Sequence record: NC_030884.1
Length of the DNA stretch: 32,995 bases
Reading direction: 5' to 3' (one strand)
Shown: positions 1,585 through 32,995 of the stretch, in pieces
Layout: each line of letters begins with the position of its first letter
How positions within the stretch are numbered: the first letter of the stretch is position 1
Program-made: the position numbers and the translations under genes
Notes under the pieces: generated by a model
Told to the model about the DNA's origin: nothing
Databases searched by the model: none
Seen by the model: the letters and a program-made list of their open reading frames with translations, nothing else

Positions 1585-1875
1585 ATGAATTACAAAGAAT
1601 TAGAAAAAATGTTAGATGTAATATTTGAAAATTCCGAAATAAAAGAAATAGATTTATTTTTTGATCCTGAGGTCGAAATTTCAAAGCAAGAGTTTGAAGA
1701 TCTTGTGAAAAATGCAGACCCTCTTCAAAAAGTTGTTGGAGACAATTATATAACAGAAACTTTTGAATGGTGGGAATTTGAAAATCAATACTTAGAGTTT
1801 GAACTTGATTATTATGTCAAAGATGAGAAAATATTTGTTTTAGAAATGCATTTTTGGAGGAAAATTAGAAAGTAA
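1585..1875 (+). CDS. acrID1: Anti-CRISPR AcrID1 (type I-D Cas10d inhibitor)
   Basis: Matches my recollection of the characterised AcrID1 (MNYKELEKMLDVIFENSEIKEIDLFFDPEVEISKQEFEDLVKNADPLQKVVGDNY...EMHFWRKIRK); acidic, 96 aa. Confidence 0.92.
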   Translation: MNYKELEKMLDVIFENSEIKEIDLFFDPEVEISKQEFEDLVKNADPLQKVVGDNYITETFEWWEFENQYLEFELDYYVKDEKIFVLEMHFWRKIRK

Positions 1876-2068
1876 TCCTATTTTTTTAATTTTTTAATTT
1901 CATTTTAATTTTCTCTTTTTCTTTTTCTTCTTACTAACTAAAACTATGAACTATTTTTTTCAAAATTGTAATATTATTCCAGTTAGTTGAAAAAATGGAG
2001 AGATGAAATGATAAATAAAAATTTAAAAATGTCATAATCTAAAAGAAAATATAGAGGTGAGAAAAAGT

Positions 2069-2377
2069 ATGAATAAAGATATGGAAGAAGTAATAGATAC
2101 AGTTCAAAGATTAATACAAGAAAATATAATCGGTGAGAAAGTTGTCAGTTTTGAAAATTCAATAGACTTACACATTCAAGAATTCGAATGGGTGATAGAA
2201 GTTTTAATTTATGCAGATGTTAAACATTACTGGTTTACTATCGGGCGTGAAAAAAAGAGATATGATATATTTATTTTTGATAATACTAGAGAATTAAAAC
2301 GAATTATTATTGAAAGTCATTTTAATGTTGAAAGAATTTTTATTGATTCAATACAATTAATTAGATATCCAAGATAA
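2069..2377 (+). CDS. Distant AcrID1-like protein (102 aa from ATG 2069)
   Basis: GTG at 2057 lies within the SD GAGGTGA; SFENSIDLHIQEFEWVI resembles FDPEVEISKQEFEDLV; GTC-type promoter at 2022..2037. Confidence 0.6.
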   Translation: MNKDMEEVIDTVQRLIQENIIGEKVVSFENSIDLHIQEFEWVIEVLIYADVKHYWFTIGREKKRYDIFIFDNTRELKRIIIESHFNVERIFIDSIQLIRYPR

Positions 2378-2405
2378 TTTTGTTTTTTTCTTTTTTTCTA
2401 ATTAG

Positions 2406-2504
2406 CTAATTCTATCTTTAATTTTTTTCAAGTTTGGAATGATAATTCTATTTTTTAGCAATTTCCTAGAATGAAAATTTAAAATTGTCATAGTTTTATC
2501 GAAA
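2406..2504 (+). repeat. 99-bp direct repeat copy 1 (promoter block; copy 2 at 3834..3932)
   Basis: 96/99 identical by manual alignment; ends in TTTAAAATTGTCATAGTTTTATCGAAA. Confidence 0.9.
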
Positions 2505-2520
2505 TTTATTAGTGAGAAAT

Positions 2521-2862
2521 ATGGGCTATCAAGATATTCCAAATGAAATAATTAAACTAAGCGAAAAATATGTGAAAATTGTCGGAGAAAGAAAAAATAT
2601 ATTTAAAACTTTAAGAAGAAAAAGTATCGAAAAAAAGATAATAGAAAAATTTGAAAAATTTTGTGATATAATTCCATTATATATACTTGAAAATATACTT
2701 AAACCAAATAATGTTTTTGAATATAGTTTCGAAAAAAGTTATAAAAACAAAAGTGAGAAAATTGAAGTTATTACTAAAGCTAGACTAAAATTTAAATATG
2801 AAAATTATGAATTAAAATTATTAAGTGTTAAATTTGAAAAATCAATTAATCTAATTTCATAA
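2521..2862 (+). CDS. Basic 113-aa hypothetical protein, possibly a very distant AcrID1-fold member
   Basis: ATG 2521 after SD GTGAG; C-terminus RLKFKYENYELKLLSVKFEK resembles RLFFEKRNNMLKLTKIELEK of the 30584 ORF. Confidence 0.6.
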   Translation: MGYQDIPNEIIKLSEKYVKIVGERKNIFKTLRRKSIEKKIIEKFEKFCDIIPLYILENILKPNNVFEYSFEKSYKNKSEKIEVITKARLKFKYENYELKLLSVKFEKSINLIS

Positions 2863-2920
2863 TTTTTTTATTAGGAATACTATTTCTAAAAGTTAAAAAA
2901 TCAGAGAGATGAAAAAATAG

Positions 2921-2960
2921 AGAGATAGAGATGTAAAAAGATAGAGAAAGCTTTATATAG
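2921..2960 (+). promoter_or_regulatory. Class A promoter
   Basis: AGAGATAGAGATGTAAAAAGATAGAGAAAGCTTTATATAG. Confidence 0.75.
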
Positions 2961-2993
2961 TAGTTTGACAAATATAATATTGAGGTAAGAAAG

Positions 2994-3389
2994 ATGAGTC
3001 AAGAAATCGAATTTCCCGTAAATATAAATTTAGAAAGTCAAGAAGAAAAAATTCAACCGCAAGTCAAGAAGTTATACAAATTTTTTAATTACGTGAGTAA
3101 CTACCATAATGGGAAAATTGATACTATGACGACTCAAAGTTACCTATATTTATTCGTTAGAGACGGTGCCATTAAGGTTGATTATGATGGCGAAATTTCA
3201 ATAGAGACGACGGGTCTAAATATTTCAATTTGGGTCAATAGAGTAGAAAAAGAAGTAGAAATTAACGGTAATGCTAATGGATACGAGTTTAATATACAAT
3301 TTACCGGAAAAGTAAAAGTAAGGACAGAAGAAAATAGACTTGTATTGACGTTAAAGCCTGAGACAATTCCTCAAATTACAACTCATTAA
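2994..3389 (+). CDS. 131-aa beta-rich hypothetical protein, candidate anti-defence gene
   Basis: SD GAGGT, class A promoter, own T-rich terminator; no recognised motif. Confidence 0.75.
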   Translation: MSQEIEFPVNINLESQEEKIQPQVKKLYKFFNYVSNYHNGKIDTMTTQSYLYLFVRDGAIKVDYDGEISIETTGLNISIWVNRVEKEVEINGNANGYEFNIQFTGKVKVRTEENRLVLTLKPETIPQITTH

Positions 3390-28159: not shown

Positions 28160-28198
28160 ATCTCATTTCACCTACTTCTATTCCTAGACTGAAAAAAA

Positions 28199-28471
28199 TT
28201 AAACTTCACGCCACATCTTAATTTCTTTTACATAAGCTATATCATCAATCTCTTCATATTTAAATAAGAATTTCGTGAACTCATTTTGTTCAAATTCAAC
28301 TGTAAAAATTGCATTTTTTACAGATGTATTTACGAATTTTTTATCTTTTGTCAACTCATAAAATTCATCACCTGATAATTCAATTGAATCATTAGTTTTA
28401 ATTATGATTTCCTTTATTTCAGCATTTTTTGAAAATATATTAACAAGTTCTTTTAATTCTTTAAATTTCAT
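28199..28471 (-). CDS. AcrID1-family paralog (90 aa)
   Basis: MKFKELKELVNIFSKNAEIKEI..ELSGDEFYELTK..YVKEIKMWR; GTC-type promoter at 28506..28521(-). Confidence 0.85.
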   Translation of the reverse strand: MKFKELKELVNIFSKNAEIKEIIIKTNDSIELSGDEFYELTKDKKFVNTSVKNAIFTVEFEQNEFTKFLFKYEEIDDIAYVKEIKMWREV

Positions 28472-28620
28472 TTACCTATTCACCACCTTCAAAAATCTAA
28501 AAGAATTATGACATTTTTAAATCTTTATTTTTTGGAATAAGTAGGATTAATATTTGGAATTTGAGAAAAATTATCGATAGAATTAGGTAATTAGGAGAAA
28601 AGAAAAAATTTAAAAAAAGA

Positions 28621-28923
28621 TTAACTTTCAAATTGACTTTTTAATTTTTCTGCTATGCTAGAATGCATACACAAAAACTTTTTGTTTCTTTTTACTTTTT
28701 TAACTTTTATGAAAAATATGCCTTTCTCTACTAATCTCATTATCCTGAAATAAGCATATGGTTGATATTTTTGTGCATCTTGTTCAAATAAAGTTAGTTT
28801 ACCATTAGAATTGTACATGGAAATACATAGATCTCCAACCTCATCCTTTTGTGCAATTGAAAAAAACTTTTGTAATAACTCTTTTTGTTTTGACCTTAGA
28901 CTTAACTTTATTTGTTCAGTCAT
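28621..28923 (-). CDS. 100-aa basic hypothetical protein (from ATG 28923), candidate anti-defence gene
   Basis: SD GGTGA and class A promoter directly upstream; the track's 12 extra residues are promoter sequence. Confidence 0.75.
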   Translation of the reverse strand: MTEQIKLSLRSKQKELLQKFFSIAQKDEVGDLCISMYNSNGKLTLFEQDAQKYQPYAYFRIMRLVEKGIFFIKVKKVKRNKKFLCMHSSIAEKLKSQFES

Positions 28924-28954
28924 TTTTCTTTCACCAATATACATTATGTAAAAA

Positions 28955-28994
28955 CTCATATATAAAGCTTTCTCTCAATTTTTACGTTTATAGC
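28955..28994 (-). promoter_or_regulatory. Class A promoter
   Basis: Minus strand AAACGTAAAAATTGAGAGAAAGCTTTATATATGAG. Confidence 0.72.
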
Positions 28995-29151
28995 TTTCTA
29001 CTTTTTTATGCTTACAATTTCTGCGGAATTAGTAAAAATATCTAAAAAATGAGAAAAATTATCGATAAAAATAAATAATTATAAGAAAATAAGAAATTAG
29101 AAATACTAGAAATAATATTAAGAACTTGAAAAAAATTATTGATAAAAAAAA

Positions 29152-29601
29152 TTAACTTGATAACAAATATGCTAATAAGACAAGAACATCAGTAGGAACA
29201 TTAACGCCTGTGATATCTTTTATCGCATTTAGTAATGAAGATAATCCTTTTATATCTATTTGGCTTTTGCTTGTATCGACTAATAAATTTCCGCTGATAT
29301 CATCTGCTACATTCAGTAAATCGAAATTGACAACTTCATAATCACTTAGAAATATTGGTGGACTTATAGGAATGAAGGAAAATAGTAAATTCCCCTTTTT
29401 ATCGCTCCATAACTTTAGTATTACTTTTTTTGATAACGGAACATAAAACACATCCTTATTGATTGCTTTCTTGATGATATATTGGTATACGCCGAAATGT
29501 GTCTTTATCACAAGCAATGATAGTCTACTACTATCAAGACTATCGTCATTACTGAAAAAATAATATGCTTTAACTTTTTTTTCGACTTGTGCTTTTTCCA
29601 T
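29152..29601 (-). CDS. 149-aa candidate anti-CRISPR (locus syntenic with SIRV2 acrIIIB1)
   Basis: ATG 29601 after SD GGTGA; class A promoter; lies just downstream of pvap, where I recall acrIIIB1 in SIRV2; homology not verified. Confidence 0.55.
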   Translation of the reverse strand: MEKAQVEKKVKAYYFFSNDDSLDSSRLSLLVIKTHFGVYQYIIKKAINKDVFYVPLSKKVILKLWSDKKGNLLFSFIPISPPIFLSDYEVVNFDLLNVADDISGNLLVDTSKSQIDIKGLSSLLNAIKDITGVNVPTDVLVLLAYLLSS

Positions 29602-29630
29602 CCTTTTCACCAATACTATATATGTAAAAA

Positions 29631-29670
29631 CTAGTATATAAAGTTTTCTCTAATCTTTTACATCTCTATT
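29631..29670 (-). promoter_or_regulatory. Class A promoter
   Basis: Minus strand AGAGATGTAAAAGATTAGAGAAAACTTTATATACTAG. Confidence 0.72.
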
Positions 29671-29748
29671 TTTCATCTTCAAAACTTGAAAAATATGCAA
29701 AAATAAAATATAAAAAAGACTAAAAAAATAATACCTTAAAAATTAAAA

Positions 29749-30045
29749 TTATTTAGCTTGCGTATTTGGATTTTGATCTTTTGCTTTTTCTCTAGCTAAT
29801 GAATTTACATCTCTTAAAGTATCCATATTCAATAATGCATTTATTCCAGTTACTGTCGTGTCCTTAATTGATTCAATAGCAATAACTGTACTTTTTGACA
29901 TTTGATCAACAGCTTTAGCAAAATTCTCATTTGACTGCTTTTCATTATATAAGTGTACTATTTCTCCAATTACGAAACTACCAATTAACACTCCTGTTAC
30001 TGCAAAAAATCCATATAGTGCTCCTTCTAATAATGTTATCGCCAT
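29749..30045 (-). CDS. pvap: Virus-associated pyramid protein PVAP/P98 (egress)
   Basis: MAITLLEGALYGFFAVTGVLIGSF..NENFAKAVDQMSKST..AREKAKDQNP matches recalled SIRV2 P98. Confidence 0.95.
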   Translation of the reverse strand: MAITLLEGALYGFFAVTGVLIGSFVIGEIVHLYNEKQSNENFAKAVDQMSKSTVIAIESIKDTTVTGINALLNMDTLRDVNSLAREKAKDQNPNTQAK

Positions 30046-30148
30046 TTTTGGTCAAATAATATTATCAAGAACTAAATAATATAGTTTTCTGTAAATTTAA
30101 AAAAATAAAGAATTTTTCAGAAAGATAGATAATGAAATTAGAAAAGAT

Positions 30149-30403
30149 TCACAATTTTTTAGTACGCACTATTTGAATTTCATATAATAAATCTTTTTCA
30201 TTATCTGTTAACTCCATAGTATTAATTCTTATCTCAATATTATCGTTTAAAGGATAAATAAATTGACTAAATGCTAATTCAATTAATTGCCGATAATCTT
30301 CTTCATTAATTTCAAAAGAAATCTTAAATTTTAAACTTAATTCTTGTATATTAGAATCTTCAAAAAACAAATCTATAATTTTTTTAACTTCTTTAAAACT
30401 TAT
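30149..30403 (-). pseudogene. AcrID1-family paralog with ATA at the expected start (pseudogene or non-canonical start)
   Basis: Leader TTGGGGAAAGAAAA identical to that of acrID1 but followed by ATA; (M)SFKEVKKIIDLFFEDSNIQELSL aligns from residue 1. Confidence 0.6.
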
Positions 30404-30583
30404 TTTTCTTTCCCCAATATTTCCATAAAAATATGACAATTTTATATTTTTACATCTTAAATTTTTCTATCTGCAGAATTAGTATCTGGAAAATGAAAAA
30501 AATTCGGCATAGCTTTAGCTAATATTTAGAAAAGAAAAAAACAAACTAAGAATTAAAAAGAAGAAAAAGAAAAAAAGAAAGAC

Positions 30584-30907
30584 TTACTTTTCAAGTTCAA
30601 TTTTAGTCAATTTTAACATATTGTTTCTTTTTTCAAAAAATAATCTTATGTATCTAGTTTCGTGATATATACCAAATACAGTGCCAAAATCATAATCAAA
30701 TCTGAATTCAATCTTATCATTAAAGATATTGATATTATTTGAATTTATCCCGTAATATTCCATAATTTTTTCAACAATTTCTTTAAGCTGTTTTTCGCTA
30801 AATGTCAGTTCTTTTTTCGTTTTTAACACTTTCCTCTGTACGAATTGATCATTTAAAAAATCTCTAACTACTGAAATTATCTTTTGACTTAATTCTTGAC
30901 CATTCAC
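30584..30907 (-). CDS. 107-aa distant AcrID1-like protein
   Basis: GTG start after GAGGGG; ELTFSEKQLKEIV and LFFEKRNNMLKLTKIEL echo AcrID1 segments; class A promoter. Confidence 0.65.
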   Translation of the reverse strand: MNGQELSQKIISVVRDFLNDQFVQRKVLKTKKELTFSEKQLKEIVEKIMEYYGINSNNINIFNDKIEFRFDYDFGTVFGIYHETRYIRLFFEKRNNMLKLTKIELEK

Positions 30908-31485: not shown

Positions 31486-31632
31486 TTATTTTTTCACCTC
31501 CTTGATTTTTCAACCTTTACAATTACTATCACAAAACTGAAAAAAACTAAGCATAATCTTAGCTAATTAGGAGAAAAATAAAAATTCTAAAAAGGAGAAT
31601 TAGAACTTACAAATAAAAAAACAAAACTTAAC

Positions 31633-31803
31633 TTACCAACAGTCTTCTAAATATTTCCTGACCTTTTTCTCACTGATTCCTAGTCCGTATGCAATCTCCT
31701 TAACTGTAAACCCTCTTTTGACTAACTCATGAACTATGCTAACTAGGTCATCCTCACTTTCAATATAGTACGTTTCTCCTTCAATTATTACTTCTTTTTT
31801 CAT
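31633..31803 (-). CDS. 56-aa HTH protein, paralog of 1193..1360 (Aca8-like)
   Basis: ATG 31803; YYIESEDDLVS..IAYGLGISEKKVRKYLE; the 92-aa track call runs through the promoter. Confidence 0.85.
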   Translation of the reverse strand: MKKEVIIEGETYYIESEDDLVSIVHELVKRGFTVKEIAYGLGISEKKVRKYLEDCW

Positions 31804-31834
31804 TTCTCTTTCACTGATATCATATATGTAAAAA

Positions 31835-31878
31835 CTCATATATAAATCTTTCTCTAAACTTTTACGTTTGTATCTCTC
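31835..31878 (-). promoter_or_regulatory. Class A promoter straddling the right ITR boundary
   Basis: Minus strand GAGAGATACAAACGTAAAAGTTTAGAGAAAGATTTATATATGAG. Confidence 0.75.
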
Positions 31879-32995
31879 GACTTTCAATAAGAAGTTTCCA
31901 ATTTTTATCATCGCTGCATATATAAATTGAAGGTTCCAATTTTTCTATCTCCAATTTTTTAAAAAAGGCCACTTTTTATTCCTAGCATGAAACAAATTGA
32001 TTACGAGCGGTGAAAAAGTCTAAAAGAATCTATTTTGAACTGAAGAATAATTATATAATTAATAACTACTATCTAGCTAATTAGCTAATATATATAATAT
32101 ACTAATTAACTAATTAGCATAATATACAAATATATAAATATTAAGATATTACGATTGTAATAATATTAATATATATAAAAAAATAATAAAAAAAAGAAGG
32201 ATAGTCCTCACTAACATAATTAAATGCCTTCTGCTAGTATTTAAACTTTTCTCTCTAAACTTCCAATTTCCTCCATTGCAAACGCAAAAAATTGAAGCAT
32301 AAATTACTAATTGCAAACTAAAAATTTGGAAATTATATAATATATTATAATATACGAATATGTTTAGTATATTTATAATTTTCAGCCGTAAAAGTTTTGG
32401 TTTCTCCTAATTATTAATTAATAATTTAATAGCTCCTAATATATATATATCTGGAAATGTATAATTATTTGGAATTTAGGAATTTACAATTAAGCAATTT
32501 TATAATATAAATTTCAACAAATGATAGAATATTTGGAATTTTGTAATTTCCAATTTACATAACTAATTGGAATAATTTTCCAAAGTGAACAATTAATTGG
32601 AATTTTGGAATTTTCAATTTTATTAACTTTTTGTAATAAATTTCCAAGGTGTACAATTTATTGGAATTTAGGAACTTAGGAATTTACAATTTAGTTAACT
32701 TATTGGAATATTTTTACAAGGTGTAGAATTAATTGGAATTTAGGAACTTCCAATTTATTAACTTTATTTTGAAAATTACGCAAAATGACAGAATAATTGG
32801 AATTTAGGAATTTAGGAATTTTCAATTTATTAACTTTGGTGCGAAAAAAACGAAAAAAACGAAAAAAATTGGAATTTCCAATTTATCTCATTAGTTGCGA
32901 AATTTACGCAAAAAATGAAAAAAACTCCTAATACCTTCTTAATGTTTTATAATTGTAGAGTAGTAAAAAGGAAATGGGAGTTTTTTTCATTTTTT
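31860..32995. repeat. Right inverted terminal repeat (1136 bp)
   Basis: Reverse complement of 1..1136; contains AATTTAGGAATTTAGGAATTT at 32801..32821. Confidence 0.95.

Follow-up and report, generated by a model that had tools for sequence, protein, structure and literature searches.

From a comparison of the rudiviruses SIRV1, SIRV2, and SIRV3, Liu et al. (NAR 2023, PMC10681719) selected gp06, gp39, and gp40 as anti-CRISPR candidates. In that study, BHS13_gp40 strongly inhibited type III-B (Cmr-alpha) interference in vivo, and its product, AcrIIIB2, was found to bind Cmr4-alpha and to stall Cmr-alpha turnover. [quoted passage not shown] Lin et al. (2023) arrived at this mechanism as well, and later papers summarize it likewise. 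For SIRV2, a preprint (bioRxiv 10.1101/2024.04.02.587611) reported that SIRV2 gp47 (AcrIA3) and gp48 (AcrIIIB1/AcrIA4) jointly abolish type I-A immunity and that both are needed. According to that preprint, SIRV2 gp47 cuts csa5 transcripts more than 10,000-fold in a Pcas-dependent manner, its toxicity and its anti-I-A effect are lost once the host promoter Pcas is swapped for an arabinose promoter, and its AlphaFold model is a winged helix like SarS (1P4X), MepR (4XRF/5F6F), and Csa3b. SIRV3 gp39 was named there as an AcrIA3 homologue adjoining AcrIIIB2, and the supplement of Bhoobalan-Chitty et al. (2024, Nat Commun) enters gp39 under ADG.09 and gp40 under ADG.14. Both genes have thus been described before: gp40 is AcrIIIB2, and gp39 is listed as a homologue of AcrIA3 (ADG.09).

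The window, that is, the whole stretch of DNA that was analyzed (32,995 nucleotides), was 100% identical to NC_030884/KX712143 (Sulfolobus islandicus rudivirus 3, SIRV3) in the 1.5-kb region compared; the SIRV3 record is 32,995 bp long, and the window is therefore the complete SIRV3 genome. RefSeq lists two hypothetical proteins at this locus, BHS13_gp39 (28621-28959, minus strand, 112 aa) and BHS13_gp40 (29152-29601, minus strand), which are flanked by three AcrID1-family genes (gp36-38) and by gp41, the pyramid-forming protein gene. A sequence-only reading of this DNA had called a basic 100-aa protein and a 149-aa protein, each in a cassette of its own and neither of the AcrID1 type. Both minus-strand ORFs are present: the gp39 ORF at 28621-28923 encodes a basic protein of 100 aa (pI 9.8; K+R 20 vs D+E 10), and the gp40 ORF at 29152-29601 encodes a nearly neutral protein of 149 aa (pI 7.8). 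Neither protein matched the NCBIfam model NF033952 (AcrID1_fam), whereas the neighbouring gp38, used as a positive control, scored 79 bits, in agreement with the earlier call. Searches of Pfam, NCBIfam, PADLOC, and PDB sequences gave no match above threshold for gp39 or gp40; matches of gp39 to Por_Secre_tail and MogR were both below the cut-off and were disregarded. The features of the locus are as follows.

28590..28620, minus strand: T-rich stretch (T7, then T6) after the gp39 stop; putative archaeal oligo-T terminator, read from the sequence.
28621..28923, minus strand: gp39 coding sequence in its 100-aa form, orthologue of SIRV2 gp47 (AcrIA3/ADG.09), basic protein with a predicted winged helix (ORF, homology, AF2 model, and published coordinates).
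28924..28976, minus strand: gp39 promoter and leader, with the anti-defence-gene motif including the TATA box at 28945-28976 and the GGTGA Shine-Dalgarno sequence at 28931-28935 (sequence and motif counts).
28977..29151, minus strand: inter-cassette spacer, in which the T8 and T7 runs downstream of the gp40 stop lie at 29129-29151; conserved with SIRV2 and similar to further rudiviral intergenic spacers (alignment).
29152..29601, minus strand: gp40 coding sequence, AcrIIIB2 (RefSeq tag and coordinates; BHS13_gp40 was cloned in PMC10681719).
29602..29652, minus strand: gp40 promoter and leader, with GGTGA at 29607-29611 and the anti-defence-gene motif including the TATA box at 29621-29652 (sequence; the same element precedes SIRV2 acrIIIB1).

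The AcrID1 paralogue gp38 (28174-28424), the third of its kind, has no SIRV2 counterpart at that position and looks like a SIRV3-specific cassette insertion or duplication. At position 28645, the contig of one RNA-seq run has C for T, a synonymous strain variant (Lys93 of gp39).

An identical 22-nt element, consisting of the TATA box and downstream sequence, was found at 28945-28966 (gp39), 29621-29642 (gp40), and 31825-31846 (before aca8). When up to 3 mismatches were allowed, this element had 5 matches (0.2 expected), and its 18-nt upstream half occurred in 12 copies (0.4 expected), all of which point inward and lie within approximately 4 kb of a genome end. gp39 accordingly carries upstream the regulatory motif of anti-defence genes that is also found with AcrIA3/ADG.09. 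GGTGA precedes the ATG by 7 nt in gp39 and 5 nt in gp40, and T-runs lie directly 3' of the stop codons (T7/T6 for gp39 and T8/T7 for gp40). Since archaeal transcription generally terminates at oligo-T tracts, these T-runs were read as putative terminators. The promoter, GGTGA, and terminator that had been ascribed to each cassette can thus be located, the last of them as a putative element. The stretch was also present in 7 RNA-seq runs, solely as assembled contigs, which are not informative on transcript starts, ends, or levels. The contig ends at 28590 and 29129-29135 fall on T-runs, may equally be assembly breaks at repeats, and were not counted as evidence.

Two other cassettes showed irregular annotations. 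gp45 (31633-31911, minus strand) is Aca8, carries the RefSeq label "terminase small subunit", and is annotated as 92 aa with the anti-defence-gene promoter motif (31825-31856) inside the ORF; the published supplement gives complement(31633..31803), approximately 56 aa. In gp42 (30149-30446, minus strand), an AcrID1 paralogue, a GGGGA Shine-Dalgarno sequence is followed 7 nt later by ATA where other cassettes have ATG, and the annotated TTG start is located upstream, within the apparent leader.

Sequence comparison indicates that the RefSeq start of gp39 is wrong and that the gene encodes 100 aa, not 112 aa. The annotated ATG at 28959 sits within the TATA box; the 12 extra codons of the 112-aa form are translated promoter and leader, differ from SIRV2 to SIRV3, and show no conservation at the protein level; and in SIRV1 the homologous protein has 100 aa. 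The 100-aa start was preferred because of these observations. The supplement of Bhoobalan-Chitty et al. (2024) gives the same coordinates for gp39, complement(28621..28923), and the AcrIA3 preprint (bioRxiv 10.1101/2024.04.02.587611) likewise states that translation begins downstream of the annotated ATG. The position of the TATA box, the length of the SIRV1 protein, and the published coordinates therefore all support the 100-aa start from which the sequence-only reading had worked.

The gene product of gp40 is AcrIIIB2, because the window is NC_030884, the coding sequence at 29152-29601 is tagged BHS13_gp40, and the same tag was cloned in the published work; locus tag and coordinates agree. 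The sequence-only reading had named AcrIIIB2 as a type III-B inhibitor from SIRV3, with the ORF left open; this ORF is the 149-aa gp40, and it occupies the position of acrIIIB1 in SIRV2. The biochemical mechanism of AcrIIIB2 is taken from the literature, the present analysis having tested the identity of the gene. An AF2 model of gp40 made from the single sequence was unusable (pLDDT 40).

The alignment of SIRV3 with SIRV2 showed how the two loci differ. Window positions 28425-29155 align to SIRV2 30047-30778 (78%), and positions 29607-30500 align to SIRV2 31530-32422 (91.5%). The unaligned segment in between, 29156-29606, is the gp40 coding sequence within approximately 6 nt, and it takes the place of the 750-nt acrIIIB1 coding sequence in SIRV2, which encodes a 249-aa protein next to pvap, in line with the sequence-only reading. 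The promoter, Shine-Dalgarno sequence, terminator, and spacer are kept around the swapped coding sequence. The proposed comparison with AcrIIIB1 revealed no homology: BLASTP of gp40 against SIRV2 gp48 (AcrIIIB1) gave an E-value of 0.14 over 9 residues, and hhalign with the AcrIIIB2-family profile gave a probability of 0.1%, by which AcrIIIB2 as a diverged AcrIIIB1 was ruled out. The exchange is almost base-exact: between a conserved promoter and terminator, SIRV3 has the gp40 coding sequence where SIRV2 has the non-homologous one of acrIIIB1. The segment 28425-29155 has further, weaker matches to several other SIRV2 intergenic regions, and copies of the promoter and spacer sequences accompany many more cassettes in SIRV2 and SIRV3. 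Given these repeats, recombination at repeated promoter, spacer, and terminator sequences is a plausible route for cassette exchange.

The same slot raises an extension of this reading, not an alternative to it, namely that AcrIIIB2 is active against type I-A as well, in concert with gp39, much as AcrIIIB1/AcrIA4 and AcrIA3 work together in SIRV2. gp40 lies in the exact slot of gp48 behind the same promoter, full I-A inhibition in SIRV2 requires both genes, and the authors of 10.1101/2024.04.02.587611 proposed such a dual function. However, gp40 and gp48 have no detectable similarity, even by profile against sequence, and Cmr4-alpha and target RNA are without an obvious equivalent in the DNA-targeting I-A Cascade. 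We consider this second activity unlikely, at roughly one chance in a few.

AcrIIIB2 has been regarded as a protein without relatives: no homologue was detectable in PMC10681719, and the ADG.14 entry of the ADG catalogue (Bhoobalan-Chitty et al. 2024, supplement) consists of SIRV3 gp40 alone. A tblastn search of 50,697 phage records with gp40 and a word-indexed search of 5.8 billion proteins likewise returned SIRV3 itself only. An exhaustive phmmer search of 1.84 billion representatives detected P0006 (52% identity, E 2e-29) and ten more proteins of 138-171 aa (E 7e-6 to 1.5e-4), and a profile search added four relatives, giving approximately 15 metagenomic relatives in all. The core of the alignment consists of an N-terminal YYF..DD region, FY-I/V-P, and K-L/I-W-x-D-x-K-G-N-L/I-L, with K44, K63, W65, D67, and L73 invariant. 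A profile made without AcrIIIB2 and P0006 still matched the gp40 ORF at 77 bits. These sequence comparisons indicate that AcrIIIB2 is not an orphan and that its relatives are detectable. The family profile gave only chance-level matches to PDB and Pfam, and ESM Atlas feature matches of 0.94 to unnamed clusters were uninformative. When viral and genome contigs were searched with the family alignment, pattern matches and no confirmed locus were obtained, probably because confirmation relies on the first, divergent sequence only.

The genes encoding two of the relatives lie in cassettes with a rudivirus-type promoter. In the locus of the closest homologue (L003, P0006), the gene is preceded by GGTGA and by a TATA element of this type, and a second cassette with the same promoter follows; an approximately 80-nt repeat with a GC-rich hairpin precedes both cassettes (L003:1-110 and L003:860-940), followed by the same TATA element. 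In the other, that of a rudiviral relative with 33% identity (L004, P0007), the promoter is nearly identical to that of gp40, the next gene has a gp39-type promoter, and the flanks match intergenic regions of the North-American rudiviruses SIRV8-11. A third relative (L008, P0018) is located 1.9 kb from the end of a 35.9-kb hot-spring contig, the primase-polymerase of which shares 48% identity with its counterpart in Hyperthermophilic Archaeal Virus 2. The gene for P0018 belongs to a terminal run of small genes (L008:1300-6200); a T-rich leader that closes with CGGGG(A/T)GA recurs before every one of them, and one adjacent pair consists of partial duplicates (repeat families D4-D6). A further relative (L009, P0019) comes from a 2.4-kb contig that was assigned by binning to a Nanopusillaceae MAG; the same contig bears a second, weaker copy. 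In L005 (P0009), the AcrIIIB2-like gene and two ORFs of unknown function (1-1630) abut a segment (1631-3279) that shares 98.8% identity with a Brevinematia/Spirochaetes MAG. The two parts join approximately 70 nt past an aminotransferase gene; in the MAG, the left part, and with it the AcrIIIB2-like gene, is absent from that place. This arrangement is either an insertion or an assembly chimera.

On this basis, the metagenomic relatives may be type III inhibitors themselves. A broader proposal is that AcrIIIB2 is the first-described member of a wider protein family (approximately 140-170 aa) with a conserved core, carried in promoter-flanked cassettes of uncultured rudiviruses and of other hyperthermophile elements (the 35.9-kb HAV2-like contig and the Nanopusillaceae-binned contig), and that the SIRV3 protein may also cooperate with gp39 against type I-A. 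Taken as a whole, this proposal is tentative, its chances falling somewhat short of even. If the family is indeed that wide, stalling the turnover of type III effectors would be a widespread viral strategy. The relatives also offer an alignment on which structures could be predicted, conserved positions for mutagenesis, and candidate new type III inhibitors.

gp39 showed 69% identity to SIRV2 ORF112 (gp47) over its full length of 100 residues (tblastn E 1e-26) and 59% identity to the SIRV1 homologue. Both gp39 and SIRV2 gp47 belong to PHROG 21188 (gp39 match, E 6e-54), and the protein database search placed the homologues of gp39 in only three database clusters. The full-length homology to SIRV2 gp47 is that of an AcrIA3/ADG.09 member. 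Across SIRV1, SIRV2, and SIRV3, hardly any residue changes in the long helix or in the basic beta-hairpin (residues 69-85), and conservation extends to the predicted recognition helix; this pattern would fit a conserved DNA target. These comparisons suggest that gp39 is most likely a type I-A transcriptional anti-CRISPR by orthology with SIRV2 gp47, and we infer that the two proteins do the same job. At 69% identity, the operator specificity of gp39 could differ from that of SIRV2 gp47.

The AF2 model of gp39 (pLDDT 76) consists, in order, of a helix, short strands, a long helix (51-66), a hairpin (71-86), and a C-terminal helix. Its matches by VIA were SarS 1p4x (Z 8.5, rmsd 2.9, 80 residues), MepR 5f6f/4xrf (Z 8.1), and the wHTH domain of Csa3 6wxq (Z 7.8, rmsd 2.4, 77 residues); Z-values of 7.8-8.5 are within the range that the tool calls common for chance arrangements, and the winged-helix call rests on the consistent hit list and no single score. 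The Foldseek list consisted mostly of MarR, TubR, and PadR proteins with weak E-values. The modeled fold is thus a winged helix-turn-helix resembling the HTH of SarS, MarR, and Csa3b, as in AcrIA3/ADG.09. In a homodimer prediction, gp39 scored 0.50 (best control, 0.01), the runs agreed in at least 93% of contacts, and pLDDT was at least 80; among solved structures, 20 of 30 homodimers and 1 of 23 monomers reach that mark. Much of the interface in the dimer model comes from the hairpin. The prediction supports gp39 being probably a homodimer.

A small wHTH protein would also suit an Aca-like viral autoregulator that acts on the virus's own anti-defence-gene promoters, instead of or besides the host promoter. 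The surrounding cassettes have one 18-22 nt promoter element in common, and Acr loci commonly have an HTH regulator. However, the assigned regulator, Aca8, is already encoded twice in SIRV3 (gp01 and gp45), and the loss of the toxicity and anti-I-A effect of SIRV2 gp47 when an arabinose promoter takes the place of Pcas points to a host target; this role is improbable. It is likewise improbable that gp39 is itself a type III-B anti-CRISPR acting directly on Cmr complexes: although its over-expression raised the beta-galactosidase activity of a Cmr-targeted lacS reporter in S. islandicus E233 (P<0.001; PMC10681719), the targeted mRNA was barely up in that experiment, the effect was judged "slight" by the authors, who did not take the gene further, a DNA-binding winged-helix fold is predicted instead, and the orthologue SIRV2 gp47 works through the I-A promoter.

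Among the points against the reading of gp39 as an AcrIA3 orthologue, we count this III-B assay, with its raised reporter activity (P<0.001) and little change in mRNA, and the fact that the AcrIA3 work is a preprint. gp39 is a poor type III candidate, because its effect in the III-B assay was slight and its 69%-identical orthologue is a type I-A inhibitor, and it is probably not a type III inhibitor. The suggestion that both ORFs are type III candidates therefore holds for gp40, which is AcrIIIB2, and probably fails for gp39. The layered suppression that had been envisaged was right in spirit, with the layers being I-D, I-A, and III-B rather than I-D and type III. As for the expectation that at least one of the two genes would be uncharacterised, gp40 has been characterised and gp39 had already been named as an AcrIA3 homologue; what is left of it is that the anti-I-A role of SIRV3 gp39 is assigned by orthology.

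The best explanation of the locus as a whole, which we hold with high confidence, is that gp40 is AcrIIIB2, that gp39 is an AcrIA3 orthologue most likely acting on Pcas, and that the second gene has been swapped relative to SIRV2. gp39 and gp40 would be two independent, early-expressed anti-CRISPR cassettes of SIRV3. gp39, as a small basic winged-helix protein and probably a homodimer, would bind the host type I-A cas promoter Pcas and thereby block the infection-induced up-regulation of Cascade. gp40, according to the published experiments, binds the Cmr4-alpha backbone subunit and locks the Cmr-alpha complex on cleaved target RNA; with turnover blocked, RNase activity, ssDNase activity, and cyclic-oligoadenylate synthesis all fade. 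Together, the two genes fill the slot of AcrIA3 and AcrIIIB1/AcrIA4 in SIRV2, the second gene having been exchanged as a coding sequence only.

The main value of the case is that anti-CRISPR cassettes were correctly called, blind, from promoter anatomy. The near base-exact coding-sequence swap, the Csa3-like winged-helix and homodimer models of gp39, and the relatives of AcrIIIB2 are new here and are modest points. The exchange of acrIIIB1 and acrIIIB2 as bare coding sequences between conserved flanks fits cassette shuffling by recombination. The corrected start of gp39, the swap, and the AcrIIIB2 relatives may be useful to those who work on archaeal anti-CRISPRs.

Compared with the known systems, the 149-aa ORF is the very same gene as AcrIIIB2 (SIRV3 BHS13_gp40), and nothing in the gene differs. 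AcrIIIB1/AcrIA4 (SIRV2 gp48, ORF249) has the same genomic slot, promoter, Shine-Dalgarno sequence, and terminator as SIRV3 gp40, and according to the literature both AcrIIIB1 and AcrIIIB2 inhibit type III-B by binding to the Cmr complex. However, the two proteins differ in length (249 aa vs 149 aa), lack sequence similarity, and have different published mechanisms. Members of the AcrID1 family (SIRV3 gp36-38 and gp42) are, like gp39 and gp40, small early genes in the terminal anti-defence region; the family model is matched by gp38 and not by gp39 or gp40. Winged-helix regulators of the Csa3b and MarR-SarA types are of the same fold class as gp39, which is a predicted dimer, and Csa3b regulates the promoter that is proposed as the target of gp39. 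On the other hand, gp39 has no sequence homology to these regulators (the Pfam, NCBIfam, and PDB sequence searches were empty) and no CARF domain, and the basic hairpin accounts for much of the interface in its dimer model. In comparison with AcrIA3 (SIRV2 gp47), the copy used in the I-A assays, about a third of the residues of gp39 are changed, and most of these changes spare the predicted recognition helix and hairpin. The two genes share the shortened start, the promoter type, and the place beside a III-B inhibitor and next to AcrID1 paralogues, and both products are predicted winged-helix proteins with SarS, MepR, and Csa3 as the best structural matches.
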